Below are positions 10,298-62,658 of a DNA stretch of 64,000 nt, in pieces. Source of the stretch: Selaginella moellendorffii (taxonomy: Eukaryota > Plantae > Lycopodiophyta). A program made the position numbers and the translations under genes. A model generated the notes under the pieces. The model searched no databases and had not been told where the DNA came from. It saw nothing but the letters and a program-made list of their open reading frames with translations. The number at the start of each line of letters is the position of its first letter. Within the stretch, counting starts at the first letter, position 1. The stretch spans positions 62,001 to 126,000 of the forward strand of contig NW_003314328.1 in NCBI RefSeq assembly GCF_000143415.4, in the 5' to 3' direction.

Positions 10298-10334
10298 GAG
10301 AGTATCACCTGGCGGGCCATCCCATGTATCTCAT

Positions 10335-31833: not shown

Positions 31834-33879
31834 TTAAAATGTTTGCTGATCGTACACATTTCCTAGCAACACGTGCAGAGCACTAGAATTGCAAGTGGCA
31901 TAGGACGCTCGTCCCACATCAAAGTGTGAGCTACAGCCGGCAAGGAGTGTCACCCATGCAACTTCATCTGGATGGTAGGGCATTTCATTGAGAAGCTGCT
32001 CTGCACTATCAAGTTGCCCAGCTCGAGTCAGCAATGCAATTAGGCACTTGAAGTGTACTAGTGCTGGAGCAATGGAATAATCGCTCACCATCAACGAAAA
32101 CAGCCTTACACCAAATTCGAGCAAGCCTTGATGGCTGCAGGCAGCAAGAACACCTGTAAATACACTCTCATCTGGCGCAAAACCCTCCCACATCATGAGT
32201 GTAAGCATCTCGACTGCCTCAAAACACTGGCCACTCAGCGCATATGAATCGATCATCACGCTCCACGACCTTGAGCTCCTATATGGCATCGTGTCAAAAA
32301 TCATCCTAGCTCCCCCCAAATGCCCATTCCTGGCATTTGCCGTAACGATTGCGTTCCACGACACAGTGTTGTGCTTGGGCATCTTCTCAAACATGGCCAT
32401 TGCGGCACAGAGCTCAAGGCTATTTCCGTACGTGGACACCATTGTATTCCACGTAAGCACGCTTTGCGATGGCGAGGAGTCAAACAGCATCTTGGACTCG
32501 GATGCACATCCCTTGGCAGCATATGCCCCCAGCATGGCTATCAAAGTCAACTCGTTGGCTTCCGGAAGCCGGTCAAACAGCTCCTTGGCCGCCACCAGGT
32601 GGCCATTCTGGCCGTAAGCATCAATCATAGCCGTCGATGACACCACGTTATGGGCTGGCATTCTGCGAAACACTTCACCCACATCACTTACTTGGGCATA
32701 TCCGGCAAGCAAGCCCGTCCAGGTCACAACATTCCGTTCTGGAATCCAGTCAAACAAGGAAATCGCCTCGTCAACTCTTCCCTTGCAGAAATATCCAACG
32801 ACCATGGAAGTCCAAGTCACTACACTGTGCTGCGGCATTCTATACACAAGCTTGCCGGCGACCCCTATATCTCCATTCGCGGCATGGCAATGGACTACAA
32901 GGTTCCACGATTTATAGTTTCTCGCAGGCATTCCATGGAAGATATCCAATCCTTCCAGGCTTCCAGCGTTCCTAGCAACCAAAGCAAGCATGGTATTCCA
33001 CGAGACCAAGTTGTGCCGAGGCATTCTTCCAAAAACTCTCCTCGCTTCTCCCGCTTGCAAACTCGACCCAAATCCAGCAAGCATGGCGTTCCAACTTACT
33101 ATACCGCGCTCGGGCATATCATCAAACAATTCTCGACACTCTCGCATATGCCCATTCGCGGCATAAGCAGCAACCATGGCAGTCCAAGACACAGCATTGA
33201 GCTCTGGAACCCGATCAAAAAGAGTTTTCGCGTTCTCGAGCTGACCCATCTGACCCAGCGAGTCGATCATAGCAGTCCACGAGACAACGTTCCACGCTGG
33301 CATTCTCTCAAAAATCCCGTAAGCTTCACGGATATACCCGCTCTGGGCATATCCAGTTAGAAACCCAGTCCAAGTTATGATATTCCGCTGGACAATTCTC
33401 TCGAAAGTAGCCTCTGCTTGCTCGGTTTGGCCACTCCTGGAAAAGCCGACGACCATAGCACTGAGCGAAACCACTCCATGCTGTGGCATTTTCTCGAGCA
33501 AAGCCTCAGCCTGTGTGAGATACCCAGTCTGGGCATAGCCCGTGACCATTATGTTCCAGGACACGGAGTTCCTCTCGGGCATGGCGTTGAACTCGCTGTG
33601 CGCTCGCTCCAAAAAACCGTTCTGTGTATACACCGTGACGATGTTGTTCCACGAGAAGACGTTTGGACGCCGGATCCTATCAAACACCGCAGCCGCTTCG
33701 TCCACAGCTCCAAACTTGCCATACATCTCAACCAAGACGTTCCCGAGCAGGGTCTCCTGCCCATCCCAGATCGTTGCATGGAGCTGCTGGAGCTCCGCCA
33801 CACTCTTGCAAGAACGTAGAAGACTGCAAAGCGCTTGCTTGCTCGCATTCCCAAAGGCCAGTCTCACTTTAATGGACAA
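31834..33879 (-). CDS. PLS-class PPR protein (PPR-a, unit 1), open 681-codon frame; start codon uncertain
   Basis: Repeat array ending HFKCLIALLTRAGQLDSA…HVLLGNVY. The ORF-track start is TTG; first in-frame ATG is at MYGKFG (~33726). Confidence 0.8.
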   Translation of the reverse strand: MSIKVRLAFGNASKQALCSLLRSCKSVAELQQLHATIWDGQETLLGNVLVEMYGKFGAVDEAAAVFDRIRRPNVFSWNNIVTVYTQNGFLERAHSEFNAMPERNSVSWNIMVTGYAQTGYLTQAEALLEKMPQHGVVSLSAMVVGFSRSGQTEQAEATFERIVQRNIITWTGFLTGYAQSGYIREAYGIFERMPAWNVVSWTAMIDSLGQMGQLENAKTLFDRVPELNAVSWTAMVAAYAANGHMRECRELFDDMPERGIVSWNAMLAGFGSSLQAGEARRVFGRMPRHNLVSWNTMLALVARNAGSLEGLDIFHGMPARNYKSWNLVVHCHAANGDIGVAGKLVYRMPQHSVVTWTSMVVGYFCKGRVDEAISLFDWIPERNVVTWTGLLAGYAQVSDVGEVFRRMPAHNVVSSTAMIDAYGQNGHLVAAKELFDRLPEANELTLIAMLGAYAAKGCASESKMLFDSSPSQSVLTWNTMVSTYGNSLELCAAMAMFEKMPKHNTVSWNAIVTANARNGHLGGARMIFDTMPYRSSRSWSVMIDSYALSGQCFEAVEMLTLMMWEGFAPDESVFTGVLAACSHQGLLEFGVRLFSLMVSDYSIAPALVHFKCLIALLTRAGQLDSAEQLLNEMPYHPDEVAWVTLLAGCSSHFDVGRASYATCNSSALHVLLGNVYDQQTF

Positions 33880-33892
33880 AGAACTACTGCTA

Positions 33893-36335
33893 CTAAAAGT
33901 TGGTTCTTTGAGGAAGGTCTTGTAATGACCACTCCGAGATACTCGTCCCGGAGATTTGCGGGGAAAATAAGATCAAGTGCGTGTGGAATTCGCGAAGCGT
34001 GCTGCGATGCCCAACGCTCATCACACAAGTTCCCGATTCTAGGAGAAGTCGATACAAGTAAGCCTGCGTAGAGTGACTAGATCTTAGAAGAGAACCAAAG
34101 AGACAAGCTTTTACCTCAGTTGCTTCGTCTATGGCACTGGTTGCTTCATCCAGGAGCGCAAGCTTTGGTTTTGATAGAAGCAATCGAGCAAAAGCCAGGC
34201 GCTGTTGCTCTCCCAGTGACAAGACACTGGACCAGTCGGCATTCGCGTCCAAGTGGAACGAGCGTTCCAGGAGCTGTTCAAGCTTCACTCTACGCAAGAC
34301 TTCCATCAAGTCGGCATCGCTGTGCTTGGATTCTGGATCATGAGAGCACACTTGTGATAGATTCACGCTAAAAAGACCCGCTACCTTGATCGTGTTTTTT
34401 CTCCCCGTCTTTGCTCCAAGTTGGATAGAGAATTTGTTGCCGGAGCGTTCCAAGAGTCATGTACGGCTTTTGAGGCACGAAGAATATATCCATGGTAGAG
34501 TTTCTTGCTATGGTTCCTCCCCCGGAGTTCCAAAGCCCTGCGATAGCTCTCAAGAACGATGTCTTGCCACTTCCACTGGGGCCAGTTATCTGGTCGGTCT
34601 TAAAGCTGTGTTAGTGATCTGATAACAAAGAAGAAAATATGAGAATTCACATACCAGGAAATTTTGTCCAGTGATCATCCTGAAAGAGAGCCCCTCGACT
34701 AGAGTCAGAGTGTGTTGAGGAGACAAGAGAGTCAAGGTCGACACTTCTATAAGAACGTCGCTCTCCGTGGTTTCGATCGATTTGATGGTGCTCAGCTCCA
34801 AAGTATTCACTACGCATTTTTTATCCAATATGTCACTGAATTCACCTGTGCATGTAAATTTAGTTCGAAGAGAATCAAGCAAACGAAGAAAAGAGTATAC
34901 CCAGGCGATCAACAACTGCGGAGAAGGAACTAAGCGATTGGAACGCTTGCACGACCAAGGAAAGGTCGCGGAGAACGGAGCTGAAAGCATAGAAAGACTG
35001 ACTGACGATCCCAAAGTCGACCTTTCCAGAAAAGTAGAACGGAGCCACCACGGCAGCGGGCAGTATTCGGATCAAGTTGCTATAGAAAACTTGGAAAAAA
35101 CTCAAGTTGCGTGAAGCTATGAGTAGTTTCTTCAAAGAAAATGCAGCAACTTACACTTTTGAAAAAATTAAATGAAAAACCAGAAAAATAAACTTACACT
35201 ATAGTTGGAAAAAACTTGTTTAAAACGTTCCAGCAGCAAGTGAAGCTCGTCCATTTCTCCCCCGTAAAACGCGATGGACTCTGCATTTTCTCGAACTCTT
35301 ACCAATCCATATCGAAAATCTGCCTCACTCTTTTCTTGGACGAAATTCAAGTTCATGAGATCCTGCAAGAAAACAGAACGAACTCGCTGAAAACAAAAAG
35401 ATGAAAAATGATACCTTTCCAAGTAGGAAACTAAGTCCAGTGCCACCAATGGAGTAAACAAGCAAGACACCAAACAGTGGAGGATAAATCCTGTATAGAA
35501 TTCCGCTGAAAGACGCCAGATCGGTGATGGAATGGAACAAAGTCATGGTAAATATAAGTGCCGTGCGAGTGAATGAGCCGATATCGTCCACAACTCTCTG
35601 ATCTGGATTGTCTATGAGTGCCAGAGATTGAATGTTATAGTAGGATCTCTCAGACAAATATTGAGCCATGTAACGTTTCGTCATCCAAGCTCGCCATCGA
35701 AGAGCAAGAGTGTCTCGTGCGTATCCGCGGATTACATAAACCTCGAAGATAAGCGAGTTAATTACACGCTGAAAAAGGCACAAACATACAAACGACTTAC
35801 TGGAAGTGCTGCGACCATAAGCCCCAAATAATAGATCAGCTGCTTGACAAACTCCTCTCGATTCTTACCTGGAGAAAAGTTTAAAGAAAGCTGATAGATC
35901 TGGAAACACTTACTTGTCAAGGCGTTGTCAAAATTCCTTCCAAGGTAGCTAAATGCCACGCTCGTCCCCGTGGAAGCAAGCGTAAGAGCAAAAACACTCG
36001 CTAACCGGAGGATTGCCTGGTTTCCCTCTTTGGAGTCGAGCCAGTAAGGTTGAGCAACTTTGCAAAATCTCCGAATGAGTGTTTGAAAGTCTGTAGTTCG
36101 TTTCTGCAAAGACAAGGACAATGAGAGCTCAATGAGAATCCAAGAGACTTACTGGTGTTATCAATGGGGACAACTGCTTCAGATCTTCTTTCACTGCTGC
36201 TTCCAGAGCTATAGCATTCACCCGGCGAAGCTTGAAAAATGATATCCTGGAACGAACTTTGCAGCGAGCAGAATCAAGGCCTTGGTTGTAGTGCCGTCTC
36301 GATGACGCTGTTGGGGCCGACGCTGCAAACGCCAT
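33893..36335 (-). CDS. ABC subfamily D half-transporter, plastid ABCD2-like, copy A
   Basis: Transit-peptide-like MAFAASAPTASSRR…; IDNPDQR, EADFRYGLVRVRENAESIAFYGGE, Walker A GPSGSGKT, PQKPYM, LSLGEQQRLAFAR, LLDEATSA, SVGH. Confidence 0.9.
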
Positions 36336-36394
36336 GGCGTTTCCAGCATAGAATTGTTCTCCAGTCAACTCCTAGCTTGAGTTCTTTTTAAAAG

Positions 36395-36830
36395 GATGGA
36401 TCCCTCCATAAATATTCCAACGCACGAGATTGACCAAAACTGTCATCAGAAACTTACCATAAACGAAACTAATTCCAGTGCATCCAAGCAGACTGGTGGA
36501 TAGATCTTCTACAAATACTGCTGAAAGGGAAAAGATCAGTGATAATGGAGCTGAAAAGAACTCTTTGATCGACATTCTCGAACTGTGGATGTTGTAGTAG
36601 AATGTCTCAGGAAAAACGAACCATGTAGCGTTCAGCCATCCAAACTCGCCATTGATCACATAAACCTGACGTAAAAGATAAACCAAAACTTTTTTGAAGA
36701 GAAATTAACGCACTAGAAATGCAGCCATCAAAAGTCCCATATAGTAGATCACTTGCCTCGTAAAATCCTCCCAATCAGACGTCATATAGACCACGGTTCA
36801 AAGGGCGTTGGTATAAGCCAACTCCGATGC
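36395..36830 (-). pseudogene. Collapsed relic of an older ABCD paralog upstream of copy A (shorter versions at ~44830-45010 and ~57560-57740)
   Basis: Fragments EDFTRQVIYYMGLLMAAF, VYVI, WRVWMAERYM, YYNIHS, GCTGISFVYG align in order with EEFVKQLIYYLGLMVAAL, VYVI, WRAWMTKRYM, YYNIQS, GGTGLSFLLG. Confidence 0.75.
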
Positions 36831-37800
36831 TTATAAACCTGTTCTGTCATCGGTTTCACAGATGACTTAAATATGTTTGCGAGCAGCACATCATGACCTG
36901 GATCAAGCGCAAGAACTTGGAGTGTAGCTTTAGCTCCCCTAGCAAGATCATTAAAGTTCTTGCAAGCTCCCAGCAGGCACGTCCACTCTATCCTATCGGG
37001 ATGGAAAGGCAAGCTCGAGACAAGCTCCACAGCATCTTTCAGATGGCCCGAGCAGCAGAGGACCCTTACGATACAGCAGTAGTGCTGCTTGCTGGGATTG
37101 ATGTGATAATCGAGCGTCATGGACAGGAAGCACGATTTGCTCCTTTCAATCCTTCCTACACGAGATCAAAGCTGAGACGAAACACGTCTCTTCCGGGAAA
37201 TGCATCATCTTCAAGCGATTTAATACATCCAAGCTTGTGGCATGGTTGCCACTGTTGTTGTAACCAGCGAGGAGAACACTCCATGACGCTCCCAGCATCA
37301 CATTCCACGTGAAGGCGTTCCTTTGAGGCATGACGCTGAGCATCAAGAGTGATCGATCATGATGCCCATCTTCCAGATATCATCATTGTTCCCGAGGCAA
37401 CATTTCGAAAAAGGCATGGCATGGAATCAAAACAATGTTTGGCATTCTCCAAATGAAGGCGCTTAACCCACACTGCAAGGATGAGATTCCACAAAAACTG
37501 ATTTTCTCTGGCATCAGATCAAAGATTTCTTCTGACCTGTTTAAATGAACCACCTTGGACGAAGCATCCATGCGTGAGTTCCAACTTAGAACATCCCACT
37601 GCGGCATCTGTACAAACATCCATTCTGTCGTTTCAAAATCTCCACATTGAGAGCACTCAATGGCGAGAGTAGGCACGAAACACACTAAATCCTGTTTCCA
37701 CAACCTATCAAACAGTTTCTTTGCTGATCAACAACAAGATCCCACTCATCCACCTGTCTTAATGTCCTGCATGTGTTCTTGTTGGGCATGGAGTCTCAGA
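36782..37800 (-). pseudogene. Deleted, frameshifted copy of PPR-b (unit 1)
   Basis: Broken ORFs match the C-terminal part of the 815-aa PPR (MTLDYHINPSKQHYCCIV…, MPQRNAFTWNVMLGA); N-terminal half missing. Confidence 0.9.
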
Positions 37801-41404: not shown

Positions 41405-42300
41405 ACAGTGTTGCGGCATTGCTGGCGTCTCAAGCAATCAAGCAAGGAGAATTTTTGCAAGAATGCCTCGACGCAACTGCTTGCTTTGGTTGCTAGGAAC
41501 CATGGAAGCCTGGAAGGATTGGATATCCATGGAATCCCTGCGAGGAACTACCAAATCTCCATTTGCGGCATGACAATGGACTACAAGGTTCCACGATTTA
41601 CGTACGCTTGCAAACTCATCCCAAATCCCGGCCAAACCGAAGCAGAGGCTACTTTTGAGAGAATCGTCCAGCCTCATAACTTGGACTGGGAGTTTTGAGA
41701 GAATGCCAGCGTAGAACGTTGTCTCGTGGACTGCTATGATCGACTCGCTGGGTCAGATGGGTCAGCTCGAGAACGCAAAGACGCTTTTTGATCGGTTTCC
41801 AGAGCTCAATGCTGTGTCTTGGACGGCTATGTTGGCTGCCTATGCCGTGAATGGGCATATGCGAGAGTTCCGAGATTTGTTTGATGATATGCCCGAGCGT
41901 GGTATGGTGAAAAGCCCACGATCCAAGCACTGAGCAAAACCACTCCATGCTGTGGCATTCTCTCGAGCAAAGCCTCAGCCTGTGTGAGATACTCAGTCTG
42001 GGCATAGCCCGTCACCATTATGTTCCAGGACACAGAGTTCCTCTCGGGCATGGCGTTGAACTCGCTGTGCGCTCGCTCCAAAAACCCGTTCTGTGCATAT
42101 GCCGTGACGATGTTGTTCCACGAGAAGACGTTTGGACGCTGGATGCTATCAAACACCGCAGCCGCTTCCTCCACAGCTCCAAACTTGCGACAGATCGTTG
42201 CATGGAGCTGCTGGAGCTTCTCCACACTATAGCAAGGCTGCAAAGCGCTTGCTTGCTTGCATTCCCAAAAGCCAGTCTTCCACTTATCCACTTCAATGGA
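41405..42300. pseudogene. Scrambled remnant of PPR-a (unit 2), segments in both orientations
   Basis: 41930-42300 matches the PPR-a 5' part on minus; 41630-41905 and ~41405-41545 match on plus; ~41553-41600 on minus. Confidence 0.88.
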
Positions 42301-42313
42301 CGAAGAACTACTG

Positions 42314-44760
42314 CTACTCAAAGCTGGTTCTTTGAGGAAGGTCTTGTAATGACCACTCCGAGATACTCGTCCCGGAGATTTGCGGGGAAAAGAAGAGCAA
42401 GTGCGTGTGGAATTTGCGAAGCGTGCTGCGATGCCCAACGCTCATCACACAAGTTCCCGATTCTAGGAGAAGTCGATACAAGTAAGCCTGCGTAGAGTGA
42501 CTAGATCTTAGAAGAGAACCAAAGAGACAAGCTTTTACCTCAGTTGCTTCGTCTATGGCACTGGTTGCTTCATCCAGGAGCGCAAGCTTTGGTTTTGATA
42601 GAAGCAATCGAGCAAAAGCCAGGCGCTGTTGCTCTCCCAGTGACAAGACACTGGACCAGTCGGCATTCGCGTCCAAGTGGAACGAGCGTTCCAGGAGCTG
42701 TTCAAGCTTCACTCTACGCAAGACTTCCATCAAGTCGGCATCGCTGTGCTTGGATTCTGGATCATGAGAGCACACATTTGATAGATTCACGTGTAAAAGA
42801 CCAAAAATTCTCGCTACCTTGATCGTGTTTTTTCTCCCCGTCTGTGCTCCAAGTTGGATATAGCAATTGTTGCCGGAGTGTTCCAAGAGTCATGTATGGC
42901 TTTTGAGGCACGAAGAATACATCCATGGCAGCGTTTCTTGCTATGGTTCCTTGCCCGGATTTCCATAGTCCTGCGATAGCTCTTAAGAACGATGTCTTGC
43001 CACTTCCACTGGGGCCAGTTATCTGGTCTTAAACCCGAGTTATTCATCTGATAGCAACAAAGAAACTTTGAGAAATTCACAGACCAGAAGATTTTGTCCA
43101 GCGATCATCCTGAAAGAGAGCCCCTCGACAAGAGTCAGTGTGTGTTGAGGAGACAACAGTGTCAAGGTCGAAACTTCTATAAGAACCCCGCTTTCCGTGG
43201 TCTCGATCGATTTGATGGTGCTCAGCTCCGAAGCATTCACTACGCCTTGTTGATCCAATATGTCACTGAATTCACCTGTGAATGTAAAGGTAGCTCGAAG
43301 AGAACCAAGCAAACGAAGGAAAGTTTACCCAGGCGATCGACAACCGCGGAGAAGGAACTAAGTGATTGAAACTCGTCCACGACCAAGGAGAGGTCGTAGA
43401 GAACGGAGCTGAAAGCATAGAAAGACTGACTGACGATCCCAAAGTCGACTTTTCCAGCAAAGTAGAACGGAGCCACCACGGCGGCGGGCAGGATTTGGAT
43501 CAAGTTGTTGTAAAAAATTTGGAAAAATCTTAGGTTTCGCGAAGCTATGAGTAGTTTCTGCAAAAACAATGCAGTAGCTTACACTGTCGAAAGAATGACA
43601 ATGGAAAAACCAGCAAAACTTACACTGTAGTTGGAAAAAGCTTGCTTAAAACGTTCCAGCAGCAACTGAAGCTCATCCTTTTCTCCCCCATAAAACGCGA
43701 TGGACTCTGCATTTTCTCGAACTCTTACCATTCCAAATCGGAAATCTGCCTCACTCTTTTCTTGGACGAAATTCAAGTTCATGAGATCCTGCAAGGAAAC
43801 AGAACGAACTCGCTGAAAACAAAAAGATGAAAATCATACCTTTCCAAGTAGGAAACTAATTCCAGTGCCACCAATGGAGTAAACAAGCAAGACACCAAAC
43901 AGTGGTGGATAAATCCTGTATAGAATTCCGCTGAAAGACGCCAGATCGGTGATGGAATGGAACAAAGTCATGGTAAATACAAGTGCCGTGCGAGTGAACG
44001 AGCCGATATCGTCCACAACTCTCTGATCTGGATTGTCTATGAGTGCCAGAGATTGAATGTTATAGTAGGATCTCTGAGAAAAATACTGAGCCATGTAGCG
44101 TTTCGTCATCCAAGCTCGCCATCGAAGAGCAAGAGTGTCTCGTGCGTATCCGCGGATTACATAAACCTCGAAGACAAGCGAGTTAATTACTCGCTGAAAA
44201 AGGCACAAACATCCAAACGACTTACCGGAAGTGTTGCGACCATAAGCCCCAAATAATAGATCAGGTGCTTGACAAACTCCTCTCGATTCTTATCTGGAGA
44301 AAAGTTTAAAGAAATCTGATAGATCTGGACACACTTACTTGTCAAGGCGTTGTCAAAACTCCTTCCAAGGTAGCTAAATGCCACGCTCGTCCCCGTGGAA
44401 GCAAGCGTAAGAGCAAAAACACTCGATAACCGGAGGATTGCCTGGTTTCCCTCTTTGGAGTCGAGCCAGTAAGGTTGAGCAACTTTGCAAAATCTCCGAA
44501 AGAGTGTTTGAAAGTCTGTAGTTCGTTTCTGCAAAGACAAGGACAATGAGAGCTCAATGAGAATCCAAGAGACTTACTGGTGTTATCAATGGGGACAACT
44601 GCTCCGGATCTTCTTTCACTGCTGCTTCCAGAGCTATAGCATTCACTCGGCGAAGCTTGAGAAACGATATCCTGGATCGAACTATGCAGCGAGCAGAATC
44701 AAGGCCTTGGTTGTAGTGCCGTCTCGATGACACTGCTGGAGCCGACGCTACAAAAGCCAT
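42314..44760 (-). CDS. ABC subfamily D half-transporter, ABCD2-like, copy B
   Basis: Same exon set and motifs as copy A; ends QRTSFE*. Confidence 0.9.
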
Positions 44761-45022
44761 GGCGTTTCCAGCATAGAATTGTTCTCCAGTCAACTCCTAG
44801 CTTGATCTCTTTTTAAAAGGATGGTCCTGTGGATCCCTCCATAAAAATCCCAACTCATGAGATTCATATAGTAGATCAGTTGCTTCGTGAAATCCTCCCA
44901 GTTCTCTGGAAGAAAAAAATCAATGGTATCAGTAAAATCGGACGTCACATAGACCACGGTTCAAAGGTCGTTGCTATACCTCCGTCCAACGAAGCTAACT
45001 CCAATGTTTATAAAAACCTCAC

Positions 45023-49164: not shown

Positions 49165-52100
49165 TGTTAAGTGCCAGCTTTAACCATTGGTCAAAAGGAG
49201 GCTCAAGGGTATATTAAGGCATGGGCTTAACCTACCCTAGTGCTCACAATGGAGTGGTGGCGCAGTGGAGTTTTTGAGGTAGCTTAGGGGTGGTTGGGTG
49301 GTGAGGAACTTCAAAAGGTGGCATAGCATAGTCTAAGGCAATTAAATCATTGTTTTTTTTGCACTGGATCATAACACTGGTATTAGAGGAGTTGGTTGCA
49401 ATGGCCAACCAAGCTAAATGCTGGAATCTTATTGTTAATGGTGGTGCCAAAAATGGTGTTGACAGAGCTGTAGAGATTTAAATTCAAGATATTGTTCATG
49501 AGTTGCAAGCCCTTAATCAAAATTAGCAAGAGGTGCAAGATGAGATGCATGGCATAATGAATACCATGTGTGAGTGTGTTGAGGCACTCGAGGCTGAATG
49601 TGGTAGCACTCTAAGTAAACCTTCCTTGGTAGATCGACTCAAGATTCTAACTTTTTCCGGTGATGGTGGTGTGGACGAGTGTCTCGCTTGGCTAGCCAAT
49701 GTGAAGAAGTTCTTGGCTGCTAGGGGAACTCCAGATGTAGAGGCTTTAGTGGCTATTTCGATGGTGTTGATGCGGGTCTTCGATGGTGGAATTGGCTTGA
49801 GGAGTCTCGTGTTGTAGATAAGAAACCACTAGTATCTACTATGGATGACTTTGAGTTTGCTTTTCATTTACGTTTTGCCCCTCACTATGACATAGAAAAT
49901 GCTTGCACAAAACTTCAACATTTTTAGCAAGGGAAAATGATGCTTGGGGACTATATTGAGAAGCTTATTCACTTGATTAGCCAGATCAAAACAACTCTTA
50001 CTTCATTGATGGCCTTCATAGTGAGAGCATGCGGCAACACTTGTGTCATTCTCAGTCTCTAAAGAATTTGGAGGAGCTTTTTGACGTGGCTTGTCGACTT
50101 GACAATGACAAGCACAAGTCTTGCAAGCGTTTGCAGAGTCCTTCTGTCGAGAATTGTCATGATGATTGCTGTGGATACAAGGATGGAAACAAGTATCACA
50201 AGCTAAAGTTTGTGGTGACTACTTTAGATGCAAAAGGGTCAAAGAAGCAAAAGTTCTTTGTGAAGAATTACAAATAGGGTTGTCATAATTGCAGCAAGCT
50301 TAAACACTACAAGGCTGATTGTCCACAGTTGAAGAACGAGCAGCAAGGCAAGAAGAATAGTCAATCTTCTACTGACAGTAAGTTAAATACTACAAAGTTG
50401 CAAACTTTGCAGCGTGAGGATGACAGGAACAACCATTCTGGTTGGAGGAAGAGGCTTTCAATCGTTCCTTGTCAACTTAATTGTGTGTGGAACATGATGG
50501 AGCTCGAGGATACTCGTGAATTAGTTTTAATGCTGGAGGGCGTGTTCTGTAGTAGTCTAGTGCGGATTTTACTGGATAGTGGGAGCAATGACAACTTTAT
50601 TTCGGCAAAGTTTGTTGCGGAGTATAGCTTGGTCACACAAGGAGTTCTTCTATACATGATGAAAGGTGCAACTACCTTTGCTTAGCATTTTGATGCTTGT
50701 GTAAAGGGGCTAAAAGTGTTGGTTGGCAAAACCACACTTATAGAGACTTTTTATCTCATGGATATCCATTGTGTGGATCTCATTTTTGGGATGCCGTTGT
50801 TGGTAAAAGTGGATCCAGAGATAAAGTGGAGTATTAAGCATGTGTCACTGGAGTATAGTGGCATTAAAGATGTGTGGTTTTGAGAGGGAGTTCAACATCC
50901 AGTTGTTATGCTCTCTGCTATATTTTTTAAGTAGGCTTGTCATAATGGAAAAACACTTTCAAGTTACTTGCTGTTTGTTCATGACTTGGGGGACCAAGTC
51001 ATGTGTGGGGGAGAAGCAGTAGTATGGGATATACTCAATGAGTTTTCTGATGTCTTTTCATCTAAACCTCCTCATAAGTTACCTCCATTACAAAGTGTGG
51101 AGCATAGGATTATGTTGGAGTCAGGGATGTGGCCAATTTATTGATGTCCATTTCAATTAAGTTATGGAGAGGAGCAAGAGGTTCAACGACAAGTCAAAGA
51201 GTTACCTAAGTTTGGATTTATTCAATCAAGTAAGTCTCCATTTGGTGCTCCGGTCTTGCTTGTAAAGAAGAAGGACGGTTTAATGCGGATGTGTATTGAT
51301 TACCGTGCCTTGAACAAAAAAACAATGAAAGATAAGATGCCGATGCTGCGTGCGGATGATATTTTATACAAACTTAGTGAAGCACGAGTGTTTACCAAGA
51401 TTGATATGAAGAGTGGATATCATCAGATTGCAATGGATGATACATCTATCTCCAAGACAGCATTCAACACAAGCTTCGGGCATTTTGAGTTTATAGTTAT
51501 GCCATTTGGTTTGACAAGTGCACTAGCCACTCGGTTGATAACGAAGGTATTTAGGCATTATCTTCATGAGTTTGTGGAGATTTTTTTGGACGATATTCTT
51601 GTTTTCAGCAAGAATATGGAGGAGCATAAAGTGCATTTGCGCAAGGTTCTTTTGTTACTCCGTGACAACAAACTTTATGTGAAAAAGAGCAAATGCGAGT
51701 TTGCAAAATCGGAGGTGGAATATTTAGGCCATATTGTGGCATCTAAGGGTGTCAAAATGGATCCAATATAAGTTGAATAAATGCAATTTTTTATTAGAGG
51801 AATATAAAGGTTGATATCCTTGAGTATTGTAAATCATGTGACCTCTGTCAATGGGTTAAGGTGCCACAAGAAAAACCAAGGGGACTTTTGCAACGTTTAC
51901 CTATTCCTTAGAGCCATTGGTGTAGTATTTATATGGATTTCATCACTTGTTTGCCACACACATAGAGGCAAAAGGAGCAAGAATGGGTTATAATGGATCG
52001 ATTGACGAAATATGTGCGGTTGTTGGCTTTTCGGAAGACTGTCATTGCCTCAAACTTAGTTGCAGTCTACTTGGAAAAGGTTTTTTCCTGATTTTGGTTT

Positions 52101-53725
52101 ACTGAAGGACATCATTAGTGATCAAAATTCAAAGTTCACAAGTGGATTTTGGAAAAGCTTTGTGAAGGCTATATAAGTGACTTTGAAACTCTTGAGTGAA
52201 AATCACCCTCAGACGGATGGGCAAACTAAGCTTGTGGTCTAGGTGGTGGAGGATTGTTAGGCACCAAGTTATGATAATAGGATAAAGAAAGGGCCCTACA
52301 ATCAAATGATAACCCCTTTAGCCAATTGGCTTAGAGTGTAAGGGATAGGATCCTAATATTGGTATCGAAGCCCAATTCGATTCTTGTGACTAACAAGTGG
52401 GGCAAGAATATTCTATGGGAATATTCAATATAGTGGATCTAGAGGGAGAACCAAGGTTTGGTAGACCCTAAAAGAAGGACCATGGTGACTAAAGGGTAAC
52501 TTAAGTATGATTGCCCCTTTAGCTAGTTGGCTTATGCTTTATTTCGTGTTTGTTATGTGATGCCATTACAAACATAGTTTTGTTATCATTTGAGTAAGGT
52601 GGTTAGTGAGTTTGGGCAATTGGTTAAGCATGCTCAAGTTTAGAATGTTGAGGTGGCTTTTTTGTGTGACCAGATAGAAGCCCCTTTCTTATTGGTAGAT
52701 GGGATTCTCTATTACAATGACTATATATATTTGTCACAGGTGGATGCATTAACTACTCAAGTTTTATTCCACTATCATGATCGTTTGGAAAAATCAAATC
52801 AGGTGGTGGAGGATATATTACGTTGTAGCGTTGGTCAAAGGCAAGGATAGTGGGATTTATATCTTCCATTGGTGCAATTTGCTTATAACAATAGCCAACA
52901 CAGTGGAACAAGTTAAATCTTTATTTTACCATGTTTGGAAGGCATCCCCGAACAATGGTGGAGTTAGGATTGCATTTGAGTAAGGATGTTCAAGATAAAC
53001 TTGACTTTGAGGCGATTGATCTAGCCACAAAACTTGATGAGATTTAAGTGGTGTGTAAATGGAATTTGCAAATAACTTAGGATAAAGCAAAGAAGTTTGC
53101 TAATGAGCATCGTCAATTCCGGGAATATAAGGTGGGTGATCTTGTCTTTGTGTGAATAATCTTTCTGTCAAGTGAGTGGTAGAACACCTTAGTGCCTTTA
53201 TGGACAGGGAAGAGTGACAAACTTTCTCATTAATATGCTAGTCCATATAAAGTGCTAGAGCACATTAGTAAAGCGGCTTATCAAGTGTGGCTACTAGCTA
53301 GGGTGAAAATTCATTTAATATTTTATGTCAGCCAGTTGAAAGGTGTACTATTGTAGAGTGATAGGCCCAATGCTTCCTTGATATATACAGCTGTGGAAGA
53401 TGGATAAGGAGCTTGAGCAAGGTTCCTCAGAAAAGGTGATCACTGTTACAACTCGTCCTTGGGACAAGGACTTTGTTAGGGGGGAAAGAATTGTTAGGCA
53501 CCAGCTTTGACCATGTGGTCAACATTGGTCAAAGGGAGACTCAAAGGTATATTAAGGCATGTTAAGGTAAGGGGCTTAACTTACCCTAAGGCTCATAATG
53601 GAGCAGTAACATAGTGGAGCTTTTGAAGTAGTTTAGGGGTGGTTGGGTGGTAGGAACTTTAAGAAGTGGTATAGCATAGTCTAGGGTGACTAGATTTCTG
53701 TCTTTTTTTGTGCCGGATCATAATA
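49165..53725 (+). mobile_element. Degenerate full-length Ty3/gypsy LTR retrotransposon
   Basis: 5' LTR 49165-49376, iMet-type PBS tggtattagag, zinc knuckle CHNCSKLKHYKADC, protease LLDSGS, RT (CIDYRALNK, FLDDILVFS), integrase HPQTDGQT, PPT ggggggaaagaa, 3' LTR 53492-53725, TSD-like aaaaa/agaaa. Many stops; RNase H region apparently deleted. Confidence 0.93.
52255..52535 (+). mobile_element. TRIM copy nested in the gypsy integrase region
   Basis: 104-bp LTR 52255-52358, PBS tggtatcgaagc, internal region matching the reverse complement of 58153-58331; second LTR only partial. Confidence 0.85.
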
Positions 53726-54202
53726 AGAAATTTGTTTGCAATTATGAAGCTATGGAATTTTGCAAGCCATTTTGAGTTAATCTCTAGAAGAGTCAACAAA
53801 AGGAGGCTGCTTCTTTGCCAAGATTATTTTTAAAAAAAAACTGTAAGAAAAGAAAGATCCAGACAATCTAAAAGTTAAATCTAAACCAAAAACACAAATC
53901 TGAACATTCTACAGGGATAATCAAAATTACCCTTTACTTCCACCAATATGAATGAATGGAAATATAAAAATGTGCATATTTACCTTATAATTTATTATTT
54001 CTTGCAATCACTCCCACATAGTGGGAGAAAACTCTAGATCAAACTCCATGCATGTGATGAGCTTCTCAATAGTAAAGATTGTCCATATTGTGAACACCTA
54101 GACTAAAGCATCACAAGCTAGACCTCTAAGTAAAACTTATCATTTCTAAAATGCCTCCATTGTCATCAAGTGTTGAAAGCCAATGCGTACCAAGTCTGCC
54201 AC

Positions 54203-54797: not shown

Positions 54798-55041
54798 TTT
54801 GCTACTATGCAAACCTCCATTGCGCGTTGTTGGCAGCATATTCAATGTATGGGTCATCCAAATGCATGTATGACTACATCCATAGGTCATCCATGAAGTG
54901 CATGGTTGGTCCCATAGATGGTCATCATATGGCCTTGTGAGGTGATGTGGAAATTGTTCACAACCAACCATTGGCCTAAAGTATTGGCTAACACCATGGC
55001 CAGTGTTCCACTTATTCACTTCAATGGATGAAGAACTACTG

Positions 55042-57487
55042 CTACTCAAAGCTGGTTCTTTGAGGAAGGTCGTGTAATGACCACTCCGAGATACTCGTCC
55101 CGGAGATTTGCGGGGAAAAGAAGAGCAAGTGCGTGTGGAATTCATGAAGCGTGCTGCGATGGCCAACGCTCATCACACAAGTTCCCGATTCTAGGAGAAG
55201 TCGATACAAGTAAGCCTGCGTAGAGTGACTAGATCTTAGAAGAGAACCAAAGAGACAAGCTTTTACCTCAGTTGCTTCGTCTATGGCACTGGTTGCTTCA
55301 TCCAGGAGCGCAAGCTTTGGTTTTGATAGAAGCAATCGAGCAAAAGCCAGGCGCTGTTGCTCTCCCAGTGACAAGACACTGGACCAGTCGGCATTCGCAT
55401 CCAAGTGAAACGAGCGTTCCAGGAGCTGTTCAAGCTTCACTCTACGCAAGACTTCCATCAAGTCGGTATCGCTGTGCTTGGATTCTGGATCATGAGAGCA
55501 GACTTTGATAGATTCACGTGTAAAAGACCAAAAATTCTCGCTACCTTGATCGTGTTTTTTCTCCCCGTCTGTGCTCCAAGTTGGATATAGCAATTGTTGC
55601 CGGAGTGTTCCAAGAGTCATGTATGGCTTTTGCGGCACGAAGAATACATCCATGGTAGAGTTTCTTGCTATGGTTCCTTGCCCGGATTTCCATAGTCCTG
55701 CGATAGCTCTTAAGAACGATGTCTTGCCACTTCCACTGGGGCCAGTTACCTGGTCTTAAACCCGAGTTATTCATCAGATAGCAACGAAGAAACTTTGAGA
55801 AATTCACAGACCAGAAGATTTTGTCCAGCGATCATCCTGAAAGAGAGCCCCTCGACAAGAGTCAGTGTGTGTTGAGGAGACAACAGTGTCAAGGTCGAAA
55901 CTTCTATAAGAACCTCGCTTTCCGTGGTCTCGATCGATTTGATGGTGATTAGCTCCGAAGCATTCATTACGCCTTGTTCATCCAATATGTCACTGAATTC
56001 ACCTGTGAATGTAAAGGTAGGTCGAAGAGAACCAAGCAAACGAAGGAAATTGTACCAAGGCGATCTACAACCGCGGAGAAGGAACTAAGCGATTGAAACT
56101 CGTCCACAACCAAGGAGAGGTCGTAGAGAACAGAGCTGAAAGCATGGAAAGACTGACTGACGATCCCAAAGTCGACTTTTCCAGCAAAGTAGAACGGAGC
56201 CACCACGGCGGCGGGCAGGATTTGGATCAAGTTGTTGTAAAAAATTTGGAAAAATCTTAGGTTTCGCGAAGCTATGAGTAGTTTCTGCAAAAACAATGCA
56301 GTAGCTTACACTGTCGAAAGAATGACAATGGAAAAACCAGCAAAACTTACACTGTAGTTGGAAAAAGCTTGCTTAAAACGTTCCAGCAGCAACTGAAGCT
56401 CATCCTTTTCTCCCCCATAAAACGCGATGGACTCCGCAGATTCTCGAACTCTTACCAATCCAAATCGAAAATCTGCCTCACTCTTTTCTTGGACGAAATT
56501 CAAGTTCATGAGATCCTGCAAGGAAACAGAACGAACTCGCTGAAAACAAAAAGATGAAAATCATACCTTTCCAAGTAGGAAACTAATTCCAGTGCCACCA
56601 ATGGAGTAAACAAGCAAGACACCAAACAGTGGTGGATAAATCCTGTATAGAATTCCGCTGAAAGACGCCAGATCGGTGATGGAATGGAACAAAGTCATGG
56701 TAAATATAAGTGCCGTGCGAGTGAACGAGCCGATATCGTCCACAACTCTCTGATCTGGATTGTCTATGAGTGCCAGAGATTGAATGTTATAGTAGGATCT
56801 CTGAGAAAAATACTGAGCCATGTAGCGTTTCGTCATCCAAGCTCGCCATCGAAGAGCAAGAGTGTCTCGTGCGTATCCGCGGATTACATAAACCTCGAAG
56901 ACAAGCGAGTTAATTACTCGCTGAAAAAGGCACAAACATCCAAACGACTTACCGGAAGTGCTGCGACCATAAGCCCCAAATAATAGATCAGGTGCTTGAC
57001 AAACTCCTCTCGATTCTTATCTGGAGAAAAGTTTAAAGAAATCCGATAGATCTGGACACACTTACTTGTCAAGGCGTTGTTAAAACTCCTTCCAAGGTAG
57101 CTAAATGCCACGCTCGTCCCCGTGGAAGCAAGCGTAAGAGCAAAAACACTCGCTAACCGGAGGATTGCCTGGTTTCCCTCCTTGGAGTCGAGCCAGTAAG
57201 GTTGAGCAACTTTGCAAAATCTCCGAAAAAGTGTTTGAAAGTCTGTAGTTCGTTTCTGCAAAGACAAGGACAATGAGAGCTCAATGAGAATCCAAGAGAC
57301 TTACTGGTGTTATCAATGGGGACAACTGCTCCGGATCTTCTTTCACTGCTGCTTCCAGAGCAATAGCATTGACTCGGCGAAGCTTGAGAAACGATATCCT
57401 GGATCGAACTATGCAGCGAGCAGAATCAAGGCCTTGGTTGTAGTGCCGTCTCGATGACACTTCTGGAGCCAACGCTGCAAACGCCAT
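55042..57487 (-). CDS. ABC subfamily D half-transporter, ABCD2-like, copy C
   Basis: Same exon set and motifs as copy B, very similar in sequence. Confidence 0.9.
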
Positions 57488-57737
57488 GGCGTTTCTAGCA
57501 TAGAATTGTTCTCCAGTCAACTCCTAGCTTGATCTCTTTTTAAAAGGATGGTCCTGTGGATCCCTCCATAAAAATCCCAACTCATGAGATTCATATAGTA
57601 GATCAGTTGCTTCGTGAAATCCTCCCAGTTCTTACCTGGAAGAAAAAAATCAATGGTATCAGTAAAATCAGACGTCACATAGACCACGGTTCAAAGGTCG
57701 TTGCTATACCTCCGTCCAAGGAAGCTAACTCCAATGT

Positions 57738-60511
57738 TTATAAGAACCTCATCTTTGGTCGAGCTCTAGCTCGGTCAGTGATCATTGGTTTCAAAGATGA
57801 CTCAAATATGTTTGCGAGCAGCACATATGATGTCTCATGACCTGGATCAAGTGCAAAAACTTGGCTAGTAACTTTAGCTCCCCTAGCAAGATCATTAAAG
57901 TTCTTGCAAGCTCCCAGCAAGCACGTCCACTCCATCCTATCAGGATGGAAAGGCATGCTCAAGACAAGCTCTACAGCATCATTCAGATGCCCCAAGCGGT
58001 AGAGGACACTTACGATATAGCAGTAGTGCTACTTGCTGGGATTGATGTTGTTAGGATTTTATCTTTTACACCTTAAGCCAACTAGCTAAAAGGGTGATCA
58101 CTTGATTGTAAGGCCCTTTCTTTATCCTATTATCTTGACCTGGTACTTAACAATCCTCCTTTCGTTAGGGAATAATTGTCCGCGATCATACTTAGGCCAC
58201 CCTTTGGTCACCATGGTCCTTCTTTTAGAGTCTACCATACCTTGGTTCTCCCTCTAAATTCACCATATTAAATATTCTTTTAAAATATTTTTGCCCCACT
58301 CGTTAACCACGAGAATCAAACTGAGCTCCAATGTTAGGATCTTATCCCTTACACCCTAAGCCAACTGGCTAAAAAAGTAATCAATTGATTGTAAGGCCCT
58401 TTCTTTATTTTATTATCTTCACCTAGTGCCTAACAGATGTGATAATCGAGCATCATGGACAAGAAGCACGATTTGCTCTCTTCAATCCTTCCTACATGAG
58501 ATCAAAGCTGAGATGAAACACGTCTCTTCTGGGACATGGATCATCTTGCATGGTTGCCACTGTTGGTGTAACCAGCGAGAACACCCCATGACACTAAGTT
58601 CTCCTCCGGCAGTGTCTCAAACAGTGCTTCTCCTGCGAGCATATTCCCATTCTGAGTATATGCTCCCAGCATCACATTCCACGTGAAGGCATTCCTTTGA
58701 GGCATGACACTGAGCATCACGAGTGATTGATCAAGATGCCCATCTTGGGCATATGCAGATAGCATCATCGTTCCATTTCTAAAAGGCATTGAATCAAATA
58801 CGTGTTTCGCTTTCTCCAAATCATGGAGCTTAATCCAGATGAGATTCCACGAAAACTGATCTTTCTCTGGCATCAGATCAAAGATTTCTTCCGACTTCTT
58901 TAAATGACCACCTTGGACGAAAGCATCCATGCGTGAGTTCCAGCTTAGAACATCCCACTGAGGCATCTCTCCAAACATCCTCTCGGTTTGTTCAAAATCT
59001 CCAGTTTGAGAGTACGCAGCTAGAACCGCATTCGAAGACGTGAGATCCCTTTGTGGCATTTGCTGGACGTTCTTTTCCACCTCTAACACCTGGCCATGGC
59101 GAGAGTAGGCACGAAGGATGGCGTTCCAACACACTAAATCCCGTTCGCGCAACCTATCAAACAGTTTCTTTGCCTCGTCTAGCTCGCCGTTCTCGGCTAG
59201 AATGATCAACATGCACGTCCATGAAACAAGATCCCACTCCACCACCTTTTCAAACAATGTCTTAACGTCGTGCATGCGTCCTGCATAGAGTCCCAGCAGT
59301 GTCGTCAAGGACACCACGTCTTGCTGTGGCATCTCATCAAATACGTTTTTCGATTCCTCCAAATACCCGCTTTGCGCAAAAGCAGAAAGCATAATGTTCC
59401 AGGTTACCAAGTCCCGCTTTGGAAAATCATCGAATAAGAGCTTTGCTTCTTTGACATACCCAAAGTGGGCATATCCCGCAAGCATTGCGTTCCAAGACAC
59501 CACATTTCTCTTCGGCATCTCTTTGAAGATGCTCTCTGCTTCAGAAGTATACCCGTTTTGGGCATATGCCGTGAGAAGCGTGTTCCACGAGATCAAGTTT
59601 ATTGATTGGTTCTCATCAAAAACTTTCCTGGCTTCATCTACATGACCGCTTCGCGCATACACACGAGTCATAGCGTTCATGGAAGCAGAATTATACTCTG
59701 GCATGAAGACAAAAGTCTTTTCCACAGATTCTATATCCCCAGCCTCGGCATTTAGCGAAAGCAGCGTCGTGTAAGACACCACGTCTCGAGAAGGCATCGC
59801 AGTGAAAAACTCCCTGGCCTCTTCAACATTCCCATTACAAGAATAAACATCGAGCATTGCGTTCCAAGAGAATTGATCATGCTCCGGCATTTCATGCAAG
59901 AAAACATGAACTCCATCCTTCAAATCTTTGCTCGCAGCCAGCAACGAGTTCCAGGCGCCACAGCGGCATTGCCAAAAAGACCGCCTTGACGTTTTCCAAA
60001 TGCCTCTCTCGGGCATATACCGCAAGAAGAGAGTTCCAAGACACCAAGTTCTTCTCTTTCATCTCATCAAAAATTACCTTTGCATCGTCCATAGTCTCCG
60101 CTTGCGCAGATACAGCAATCATTGTGTTCCACGACACAAGATCTCGTCCCGGCATTCTGTCGAAGATCTCCCGACACACCGACAGTTCCCCCGATCGGGC
60201 ATATGCGAACAAGATCGTGTTCCACGACACCATGTCCCTGGCGGCGCTGGGCATGCCATCGAAAACCTCTCGCGCGCCCTCCAAATCCCGATTCTTGCAA
60301 TGAGCATCAAGCAGGAGATTCCAGGTGAAGGAATCCCAAACCGGCATCGATCGAAAGACGCGCCGGGACTGCCGCAGCGTCCATACATCTCGATGATCTT
60401 GTTGCCGAGGAAGATATCCCCAGATCGCAGCGAGCGGTCGACGCTGGCGTGGAGATCTCTTGCGCGATCGAGCAAGGCACAGCCTTGGATCTCCCGCAAG
60501 TAGCCATCCAT
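57738..60511 (-). pseudogene. Disrupted copy of PPR-b (unit 3)
   Basis: Frameshifting deletions near 60360 and 59960, small in-frame deletions, TRIM insertion at 58049-58435. Confidence 0.92.
58049..58435 (-). mobile_element. TRIM (terminal-repeat retrotransposon in miniature), 387 bp
   Basis: 104-bp TG…CA direct repeats 58049-58152 and 58332-58435, exact 5-bp TSD gatgt, PPT gaaaggaggat on minus strand, non-coding interior; site is empty in the paralog at ~45315. Confidence 0.95.
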
Positions 60512-60630
60512 TCATATGGAAGCTATGTTCTTGGCAAATCCAGCCATCGCTCGACGCTGGCATGGAGATCTTCCGTGCGATCAAGCTTGTCTAGTGCAAT
60601 CTCTAGCGCTCTCATGGATCATTGAGGGCG

Positions 60631-62658
60631 ATGCTCAAGAGCGATGAGCACGTCTTGAGCCGGCGCTGCCTGGATCGAATCGACGAGGACATCCAGCGCC
60701 TTGATTCCAGCAGCGACAGGGGGGTGTGCGCCTGGATCGTCAAGCGCTGCGGCAACGCCAGGGCGATCGAGCAGGGTCGCCGGATTCACGCCCACATCAC
60801 CTCTTCCTCGTCCCTGACCTCCACGCATTCCTCCAGCGACACATTCCTTCTCAATCTCCTGGTGGAGATGTATGGCAAGTGCTCCAGCCTCGAGGAAGCG
60901 CGCCTGGTCTTCGATGGGATCGCGCATCGCAACGTCTTTAGCTGGACGATCATGCTCGCAGCATATGCCCAGAACGGGCATCTGGCGCAAGCGATCCATC
61001 TCCTGCGAAGAATGGATCACGAGGGCGTCAAGCCGAGTGGATCCACTTTCGTCGCCATCGCCGCGGCTGGCACCGCGGATCTCCCCCTCCTCCGCTCGAT
61101 CCACGCCAGGGCCAGCGCCACCGGCGCCCGCGATCTCGTCCTCGACAACGTGATGCTCGATTCCTTCGCGCGATTGGGCGCGCTGGAGCTGGCGCGATCC
61201 ATCTTCGACGCCATGGAGGAGAAGACCCTCGTCTCCTGGAACGCGATGATCGGCGCTTACGCCCGGCTCGGGCGCGAGGATCTAGTGCTATTCCTCTTTC
61301 GCGCGATGGATCTGGATGGCGTCCCGCACAACAGGATCACATTTCTCAACGCGATCGCCGGCATCCAGTCGATCGATCGCGGCAAATTCGTCCAGGAGCG
61401 CGCCGCCGCGGCTGGATTCGAGGGCGATATTGCCGTACGGAACGCGCTGGTTAGCCTGTACGGGCGGTGCCGGAGCGCGGCCATGGCGCGTCGTGTGTTT
61501 GATGCCATGGAACGAAGAACGAGGGTGACGTGGACGGCTATGATCTCGGCATATGCCCAGAATGGGCATAGCAAGGAGGCATTGGAGCTCTTCTTTGAGG
61601 CTATCGAATCGTCGTCGCCACCTTTGGATCTCGACACGCCGGTCTTCTTGAGCGCCCTCGAGGCTTGCGCGAATGTGGGCGATCTCGATCGAGGAGTTTT
61701 GATTCACGAGAAAATCCTTGAATCGTCTGTAAAGGTTGACGCTCTCGTGAGCAACAGCTTGATAAACATGTATGCCAAGTGTGGCAGCCTTGCAAAAGCT
61801 TTGGAAACTTTCGAAAAGCTCTCGAGTCCGGGTGTGATTGCCTGGAACACAATGATCTCGGCGTATGCCCAGGCTGGAGATAGCAACGCCGCAATCGAGC
61901 TATTCCACCGAATGGATCTCGAGGGCATCAAGCCCGACGGCGTCACCTTTATGGTTTTGCTCGAGGCATTGGGATCGATCGGATCACTGCAAGATGGAAA
62001 GTTCATCCACACGCGTGCTGCATCGCTTGGATTTGACGAACAAGACACTTCTCTCTGCAACGCTCTCTTGAACCTTTACACCAAATGTGGGAGCATGCAA
62101 GACGCTATCGCCCTCTTTCACAAAATGCCCACTCCAAACCAGATCTCCTGGACTTGCACCATTGCAGGGTATGCTCAACAGGGGCATAGCACCGAAGCCC
62201 TCGAGCTCTACCAAAAGATGGACTTGGAAGGCACCAAGCCCAACCAGGTAACACTTTTGGGAGTGCTCACGGCGTGCACACACGCCGGCCTGGTCGAGGA
62301 TGGTATATACTACTACAATTCCATGGTATCCGACCATAACATCCAGCCCAAGGAAGAACACTACGGTAGCCTCATTGACATGCTCGCTAAAGCAGGATGG
62401 CTGCAAGAAGCCGAGGCCCTGATCGAAACCCTGCCCTTTCACCCGTTCGCCGTGGCATGGACATCCCTCCTTGGGGCATCTTGCAACCACAAGGACGTTG
62501 ATCGCGCCGAGCGAGTAGCAGCCAAAGCAATCGATCGAGAACCCGGCAATGCTGGTCCATACATTTGCCTGTCAAACATGTACGCGACGCTGGACCGACG
62601 GGACGACGTCGCCCGCGTGAAGAAACTGATCGCCTCGCTCAAAGGTGGCGGACAATAA
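60631..62658 (+). CDS. PLS-class PPR-E protein (PPR-c, unit 3, ~675 aa), P-L-S triplet type, no DYW
   Basis: Intact ORF; HYGSLIDMLAKAGWLQEA…WTSLLGA…PYICLSNMYA…DDVARVKKLI. Confidence 0.93.
   Translation: MLKSDEHVLSRRCLDRIDEDIQRLDSSSDRGVCAWIVKRCGNARAIEQGRRIHAHITSSSSLTSTHSSSDTFLLNLLVEMYGKCSSLEEARLVFDGIAHRNVFSWTIMLAAYAQNGHLAQAIHLLRRMDHEGVKPSGSTFVAIAAAGTADLPLLRSIHARASATGARDLVLDNVMLDSFARLGALELARSIFDAMEEKTLVSWNAMIGAYARLGREDLVLFLFRAMDLDGVPHNRITFLNAIAGIQSIDRGKFVQERAAAAGFEGDIAVRNALVSLYGRCRSAAMARRVFDAMERRTRVTWTAMISAYAQNGHSKEALELFFEAIESSSPPLDLDTPVFLSALEACANVGDLDRGVLIHEKILESSVKVDALVSNSLINMYAKCGSLAKALETFEKLSSPGVIAWNTMISAYAQAGDSNAAIELFHRMDLEGIKPDGVTFMVLLEALGSIGSLQDGKFIHTRAASLGFDEQDTSLCNALLNLYTKCGSMQDAIALFHKMPTPNQISWTCTIAGYAQQGHSTEALELYQKMDLEGTKPNQVTLLGVLTACTHAGLVEDGIYYYNSMVSDHNIQPKEEHYGSLIDMLAKAGWLQEAEALIETLPFHPFAVAWTSLLGASCNHKDVDRAERVAAKAIDREPGNAGPYICLSNMYATLDRRDDVARVKKLIASLKGGGQ

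Follow-up and report, generated by a model that had tools for sequence, protein, structure and literature searches.

Why should a transporter gene be present three times over when each of its neighbors is kept intact only once, and each time in a different repeat unit? This question is raised by a stretch of 64,000 nucleotides from the lycophyte Selaginella moellendorffii (the window), which corresponds to positions 62,001 to 126,000 of the forward strand of contig NW_003314328.1 in RefSeq assembly GCF_000143415.4. It was analyzed as part of scaffold GL377632.1 of assembly GCA_000143415.2, where the record coordinate equals the window coordinate plus 62000; all coordinates given here are window positions unless scaffold GL377644.1 is named. 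The window carries an array of three repeat units (U1, U2, U3), each with a gene for a half-size ABC transporter of subfamily D (ABCD) accompanied by whole or broken copies of three PPR genes (PPR-a, PPR-b, PPR-c). An earlier sequence-only reading had proposed that selection favored extra ABCD copies and that the passenger PPR genes returned to single copy by complementary loss, with the caveat that part of the pattern might be simple geometry. Our analysis makes this caveat the main explanation. The locus is most likely a young, species-level tandem array of a plastid-type, ABCD2-like gene, produced by two tandem duplications with breaks in PPR genes, and the pattern of each neighbor being kept once is mostly a by-product of where the breakpoints fell.

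Organization and origin of the array

Self-BLAST and a repeat finder were used to delimit the repeat units, and both recovered the three-unit array described previously. The units occupy 33.4-37.7, 41.9-48.4 and 55.0-61.4 kb, and their mutual identity is 93-98%. U1 (33440-37653) matches U2 (41909-45947) at ~92.8% identity by self-BLAST, and U1 matches U3 at 92.8% over the ABCD part. U2 (42271-48377) and U3 (54999-61399) are closer: identity is 97.6% over the ABCD part and 93.9% over the PPR part. A spacer of 4.0 kb lies between the first two units and one of 6.6 kb between the last two.

Each unit retains an intact copy of one of three intronless PPR genes of the PLS/E type, for which Pfam PPR E-values range from 1e-71 to 1e-127. 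Being only 26-30% identical to one another, they are different genes. PPR-a, of PLS type (31834-33879, minus strand; E = 1.9e-100), lies in U1 and has a stop-to-stop frame of 681 codons that begins 14 bp past the ABCD stop codon. It had been described as open, which holds for the frame, but the conserved N-terminal helix precedes the first in-frame ATG; this ATG, at 33726, is 51 codons into the frame and is the annotated start of the 630-residue GenBank product, and the ATG at 33848 is off the frame by one base. PPR-b lies intact in U2 (45023-47470, minus strand; 815 aa), is recognized by Pfam, and was returned as a called gene by exact look-up. A search with its protein listed no relative above 40% identity, though the listing lacked the query itself and is thus uninformative on alleles. 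PPR-c lies intact in U3 (60622-62658, plus strand), with a frame of 678 codons and a product of 675 aa from the ATG at 60631; it is also detected by Pfam, and the exact protein is present in a public collection. The E motif was found in PPR-c and, weakly, in PPR-b.

The other PPR copies in U1 and U2 are partial. U1 retains a broken C-terminal fragment of PPR-b (36847-37653, minus strand), in a place where the gene had been considered deleted; the fragment is 87-91% identical to 45052-45947 and contains open reading frames of 50-127 codons, and its allele on the sister haplotype is longer, extending as far as the position equivalent to 46243. In U2, a scrambled 5' fragment of PPR-a (41688-42303; approximately the first 260 codons) consists of an inverted piece (41688-41905) and a direct piece (41909-42303). 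By self-BLAST, 33101-33318 matches 41905-41688 at 92.7%, and 33440-33719 matches 41909-42188 at 94.7%, with a 10-nt deletion near the start. U2 also carries a 5' fragment of PPR-c (47609-48385, plus strand; approximately the first 255 codons of the gene), a 258-codon open reading frame recognized by Pfam as PPR and 94.4% identical to the U3 copy; its homology to 60600-61399 ends at 48377/61399, the right end of the younger duplicated segment. PPR-c is without any copy in U1, as previously stated, and PPR-a is without any copy in U3. The pieces of PPR-a, of PPR-b in U1 and of PPR-c in U2 all stop exactly at repeat ends, and no trace of the missing halves was found in the spacers. Because they end where the duplicated segments end, these partial copies were most simply partial from birth and not reduced by later loss.

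Judging from this layout, the array probably arose in two steps from a starting order of PPR-a, ABCD, PPR-b and PPR-c. The older of the two tandem duplications would have broken within PPR-a and within PPR-b, yielding unit 1, with the whole of PPR-a, ABCD and the tail of PPR-b, and a second unit with the head of PPR-a, ABCD, the whole of PPR-b and PPR-c. A younger tandem duplication of this second unit, beginning 43 bp beyond the ABCD stop codon and ending within PPR-c, would then have given rise to units 2 and 3. The partial PPR copies would be the products of these breakpoints. ABCD would be the sole gene present three times because it is the sole gene lying wholly inside both duplicated segments. 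Among the PPR genes, PPR-b alone would have been copied whole, and its duplicate in unit 3 would have decayed later through frameshifts and the insertion of a terminal-repeat retrotransposon in miniature (TRIM).

The contents reported earlier for units 2 and 3 were otherwise upheld, including this decayed copy. The PPR-b pseudogene of U3 (57741-60584, minus strand) differs from the U2 gene by deletions of 10, 8, 6, 9 and 9 nt, among others, and is divided into open reading frames of 96, 505, 130 and 232 codons. It has accumulated 66 private substitutions, compared with 17 in U2. Conversion of this copy by the U1 fragment was considered and ruled out, as the U1 fragment is closer to U2. The TRIM within it (58049-58435, minus strand) is 387 bp long and consists of a 179-nt core between 104-nt TG..CA long terminal repeats (LTRs). 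When it is aligned with U2 and the sister copy, its exact ends and a 5-bp target duplication, GATGT, at 58044-58048 and 58436-58440, become apparent, and the site is empty in U2 and on the sister haplotype. Read on the minus strand, the element has TGG after the 5' LTR and a purine run before the 3' LTR, in agreement with its assignment as a TRIM. Its LTRs are 86% identical, with transitions accounting for 13 of the 15 differences, and self-BLAST detects a related copy at 52255-52514.

This related copy falls in the spacer between U2 and U3, which holds the remnant of an LTR retrotransposon (49165-53727, plus strand). The remnant is marked by matches to RVT_1 (E = 7.6e-31 at 51256-51771) and RVP_2 (50329-50685) and by terminal repeats at 49185-49374 and 53523-53723, which self-BLAST aligns at ~78% identity. 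It is missing on the sister haplotype, where the sequence runs unbroken across the insertion site. The first spacer is AT-rich and without coding signal.

Copy number on the sister haplotype

The sequence-only reading had called for a comparison with the other haplotype. The PPR-c protein clusters with an allele, XP_024516750.1, encoded on scaffold GL377644.1, and the first 18 kb of this scaffold (1-18121) served as the sister-haplotype sequence; in the unique flank, it is 98.1% identical to the window. It holds two ABCD genes, compared with three in the window, at GL377644.1 positions 8386-10829 and 15884-18121. One of these copies, SA, is the allele of U1 (97.6% identity), and the other, SB, has flanks that match U3 on both sides. 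Over the ABCD gene, SB shares 98.5% identity with U3 and 98.2% with U2; the three are equidistant there, and each has 20-26 private changes. Since a single locus can supply no more than two alleles, the window haplotype must truly carry the duplication, and its units 2 and 3 are not mere alleles. No counterpart of the U2 ABCD gene was found in the 18 kb. With two ABCD copies only on the sister haplotype, the third copy is hemizygous.

Neither unit 2 nor the TRIM nor the LTR element occurs on the sister haplotype. All of its readable ABCD exons are open, such that the two haplotypes together carry five ABCD genes with open frames and canonical splice sites, one of which (SA) is readable through exon 9 only. 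Its PPR-b frame is intact at 816 codons, of which GenBank annotates 571 aa only. Thus, the surviving PPR-b is that of unit 2 on the window haplotype, but on the sister haplotype it is the one in the unit-3 position.

The order of events behind this difference can be viewed in two ways. The two-copy arrangement may be ancestral, with unit 2 added later on the window haplotype by a complex duplication or insertion; alternatively, the sister haplotype may have lost unit 2 by deletion. We regard later gain as a tentative but serious possibility. It would account for the equidistance of U2, U3 and SB in the ABCD gene and for the closeness of the U2 copy of PPR-b to that of SB (17 private changes in U2 as opposed to 66 in U3), as if an SB-like unit had been the source of U2. 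Unique AT-rich DNA is present both in the sister spacer and in that of the window, and hence the difference between them is not one clean deletion. On the other side, unit 2 adjoins an old PPR-a fragment, ~93-95% identical to unit 1, which is missing from the sister copy, and its truncated PPR-c is what a simple tandem duplication would leave in its left member. Loss on the sister haplotype is favored by this PPR-a fragment, whereas the closeness of U2 and SB in PPR-b and the unshared spacer DNA favor a more complex history.

Several points count against the explanation that we prefer. The units are not arranged head to tail but lie 4.0 and 6.6 kb apart, which calls for insertions at a later time or for a more complex event. 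Within PPR-b, U2 is closest to the sister copy, while the flanks pair U3 with the sister copy, a conflict that needs extra conversion or recombination. The two transposons pose a problem of timing: absence from the sister haplotype implies that both the TRIM and the LTR remnant are young, in conflict with the age suggested by the divergence of their LTRs. Finally, the predicted plastid targeting of the ABCD proteins is drawn solely from a Ser/Arg-rich N-terminus and the names given to relatives.

Structure of the ABCD genes

Exon boundaries were read from a three-way alignment of the copies and then checked by script. Database, profile and structure searches were run exon by exon rather than on the joined spliced protein, while concatenated exons were used locally for frame checks, substitution counts and one tree. 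All three genes lie on the minus strand, have ten exons, and were previously annotated in GenBank. The U1 gene (36335-33893) encodes 648 aa, compared with 651 aa for the GenBank gene of the same span. Its exons 1 to 5 are located at 36335-36153, 36103-35914, 35868-35801, 35741-35415 and 35362-35198, and exons 6 to 10 at 35129-34901, 34845-34655, 34589-34385, 34332-34115 and 34063-33893. The U2 gene (44760-42314) encodes 649 aa, as does the GenBank gene of the same span. For the U3 gene (57487-55042), our model gives 649 aa and that of GenBank 625 aa. In agreement with the earlier description of three open copies with intact motifs, each frame of 648 or 649 codons is without internal stops. The introns are 45-68 nt long and all GT-AG in each copy, and all indels among the three copies are intronic. 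In U2, the ABCD start lies 263 bp from the PPR-b stop, which leaves a short promoter region that has been copied along with each unit.

The proteins have the architecture of ABCD subfamily half-transporters, with an N-terminal PF06472 membrane domain and one C-terminal nucleotide-binding domain. Open reading frames over the exons match PF06472 (ABC_membrane_2) at E = 2.4e-18 and 3.8e-14 and also match PF00005, both domains being found in the U1 gene; precomputed Pfam assignments list PF06472 on the GenBank products of all copies. In exon-wise scans, matches to the ABCD family model TIGR00954 are collinear exon by exon. A motif search identified the Walker A, Q-loop, signature, Walker B, H-loop and EAA-like loop motifs in U1, U2, U3 and SB. 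The EAA-like cytosolic loop, with its ESIAFYGGE motif, lies between transmembrane helices 4 and 5 (TM4 and TM5) and is present in all copies. It shows changes at sites invariant in 19 orthologues: Y274F in all but U1, L276M in U2 and N282S in U3. The Selaginella copies also deviate at several otherwise fixed sites (invariant in 18-19 of the 19 orthologues). The first 40 residues include a single acidic residue and many Ser, Ala and Arg. Each ABCD protein is probably a dimerizing, ATP-driven transporter of the chloroplast envelope.

Just upstream of copy 1, ABCD exons 3 and 4 occur again as a decayed relic (36494-36775, minus strand). Sensitive blastn against the U1 gene resolves it into three collinear pieces of 72-76% identity, and its translation contains still recognizable exon 3-4 peptides with deletions and stops. 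Shorter remnants are located upstream of copies 2 and 3 (44856-44998 and 57583-57728). The occurrence of this relic upstream of every ABCD copy implies that an even older partial duplication preceded the array.

Selection and gene conversion

The ABCD coding sequences have evolved under purifying selection and the copies are intact. By Nei-Gojobori counts, the whole-gene ratio of nonsynonymous to synonymous differences per site (pN/pS) is 0.35 for U1-U2, 0.31 for U1-U3 and 0.37 for U2-U3. These values are not near 1, the outcome that would have spoken against the earlier reading, and are below neutral with p = 1.5e-6, 4.6e-9 and 3.4e-3, respectively. Between coding-sequence nucleotides 901 and 1500, the core with the least homogenization, the U1 type differs from the U2/U3 type with pS of 0.21-0.23 and pN/pS of 0.25-0.27 (p ~1e-6). 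Private changes number seven nonsynonymous and three synonymous in U2 and six and seven in U3, too few to judge each copy; those of U2 are indistinguishable from neutral. Positive selection on ABCD was also considered and rejected: pN/pS does not exceed 0.5 in any informative comparison, the 3' segment having too few differences.

The copies have diverged very unevenly along the gene: in the 5' half they differ by 2-3%, and at coding-sequence nucleotides 1651-1800 and in intron 9 next to them the three window copies show no difference at all. Such mosaic divergence points to gene conversion among the copies, and the whole-gene pS therefore understates the age of the older duplication. Direct evidence comes from the sister haplotype, where SA and SB are identical over ~600 aligned bases of the 5' half. 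In the same bases, U1, the allele of SA, differs from SB at 19 sites, which indicates that the conversion is recent.

These data would also accommodate a fast-evolving, lycophyte-specific branch of plastid ABCD transporters. Conversion would homogenize the gene ends, while the core of TM5-TM6 and the linker (residues ~289-500) would stay distinct between U1 and U2/U3, allowing two specificities or an obligate heterodimer, and the third copy would be a segregating dosage variant. We consider this scenario unlikely.

Complementary loss and assembly

Unlikely, too, is the earlier proposal that the whole four-gene block was triplicated, that selection for dosage or a new function retained three ABCD genes, and that redundant PPR copies were then removed by complementary loss. 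The intactness and constraint of all three ABCD genes are as it would predict, and the same may be said of the differences between the U1-type and U2/U3-type proteins, which number ~50 residues, half of them between residues 289 and 500. Furthermore, PPR-b in unit 3 was truly lost after duplication. However, this is the only PPR copy that was duplicated whole and then lost; the other partial copies end at repeat boundaries without remnants of the missing halves, and PPR-c is altogether missing from unit 1, as is PPR-a from unit 3. Nor is there positive evidence of selection for extra ABCD copies. The third copy is missing on the sister haplotype, U2, U3 and SB are equidistant, every pN/pS value falls well short of 1 and gives no hint of positive selection, the private changes of U2 are indistinguishable from neutral, and U2 and U3 have each altered one residue that is invariant in 19 orthologues.

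It is highly improbable that the array is an assembly artefact in which U2 and U3 are two alleles of one locus set in tandem, leaving two ABCD loci only: both haplotypes are known to be included in this assembly, the U2-U3 ABCD identity of 98.1% equals the allelic identity of the unique flank, and the sister scaffold has two copies and ends 3.5 kb past PPR-c, but the window contains no N letters, a diploid locus provides two alleles and not the three sequences observed, the flanks of U2 and U3 differ (a PPR-a fragment as opposed to a spacer common to the sister), and so does their structure (PPR-b intact or frameshifted with a TRIM, PPR-c truncated or whole).

Relationship to known transporters and duplications

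The closest database proteins are from streptophytes, and many are named 'ABC transporter D family member 2, chloroplastic'. In the tree, the Selaginella copies form a single clade (100/100 support) with a stem of 1.54 substitutions per site inside an unresolved streptophyte polytomy; given this very long branch, any orthology to plant ABCD2 is putative. A search with one ABCD exon open reading frame returned relatives of at most 65% identity and no Selaginella entry. With a gymnosperm-like ABCD2 query, the best 120 matches were all seed-plant ABCD2 proteins, with no Selaginella paralogue and none of the window's own ABCD proteins among them. Likewise, a 190-residue open reading frame over exons 9 and 10 matched no Selaginella fragment, its best match being 54% identical. 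A literature search yielded no description of the Selaginella ABCD array.

The predicted proteins resemble plant ABCD2 of the Arabidopsis At1g54350 type in being half-size, in having a PF06472 membrane domain ahead of the ATPase domain, and in possessing all ATPase motifs, including the LSLGEQQR signature, together with a Ser/Arg-rich N-terminal extension. In contrast to plant ABCD2, the Selaginella copies are shorter (648 aa versus 700-770), lack the ~43-residue insert after Walker A, and are encoded by a tandem array; identity to plant ABCD2 is ~45-55% overall and 60-75% in the membrane-domain exons. We know of no substrate for a plastid ABCD2 protein. Among solved structures, those of Arabidopsis ABCD1 and of a mycobacterial transporter (6tqe) come closest in sequence. 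Peroxisomal ABCD proteins such as Arabidopsis ABCD1/COMATOSE (9wfg and related structures) share the membrane-domain family and the EAA-like loop. However, ABCD1 is full size (1337 aa) and peroxisomal, and the match to it is weak (E = 4e-5, in a membrane exon). The transit peptide of Arabidopsis ABCD2 sends cargo to the chloroplast inner envelope (bioRxiv 10.1101/2024.02.14.580295), and one survey reports more ABCD copies for early land plants than for flowering plants (PMC9164057).

As a duplication, the array differs in nothing essential from ordinary tandem segmental duplications, with which it shares nested copies, genes truncated at junctions, decay of redundant copies, transposons in spacers, and concerted evolution. 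What is special is the difference between haplotypes, which carry three and two copies and preserve PPR-b in different units. As an ordinary tandem array of already annotated genes, it leaves current understanding unchanged. Its value is as a clean worked example: when tandem duplications have their breaks in neighboring genes, the outcome can mimic complementary loss. The locus also shows that a single diploid genome can combine haplotypes differing in copy number with gene conversion and with opposite fates for the duplicated PPR-b. The divergent, amplified ABCD2-like genes of this lycophyte also add natural variants for plant transport biology.

Neighboring genes

Three further features were observed before the array in the window. 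A Peptidase_M16 (insulinase) exon at 15654-16445 (minus strand) is part of a multi-exon gene upstream of the array. Two PPR frames at 21406-23631 and 23632-25416 (plus strand), annotated as products of 723 and 561 aa, are in the same reading frame with one stop codon between them; they may represent one long PPR gene (21406-25416) split by a nonsense change. A tandem pair of 2-oxoglutarate-Fe(II) oxygenase genes (27879-29069 and 29607-30818, minus strand), each encoding 344 aa with DIOX_N and 2OG-FeII_Oxy domains, sits in a 1.7-kb direct repeat of ~94% identity.

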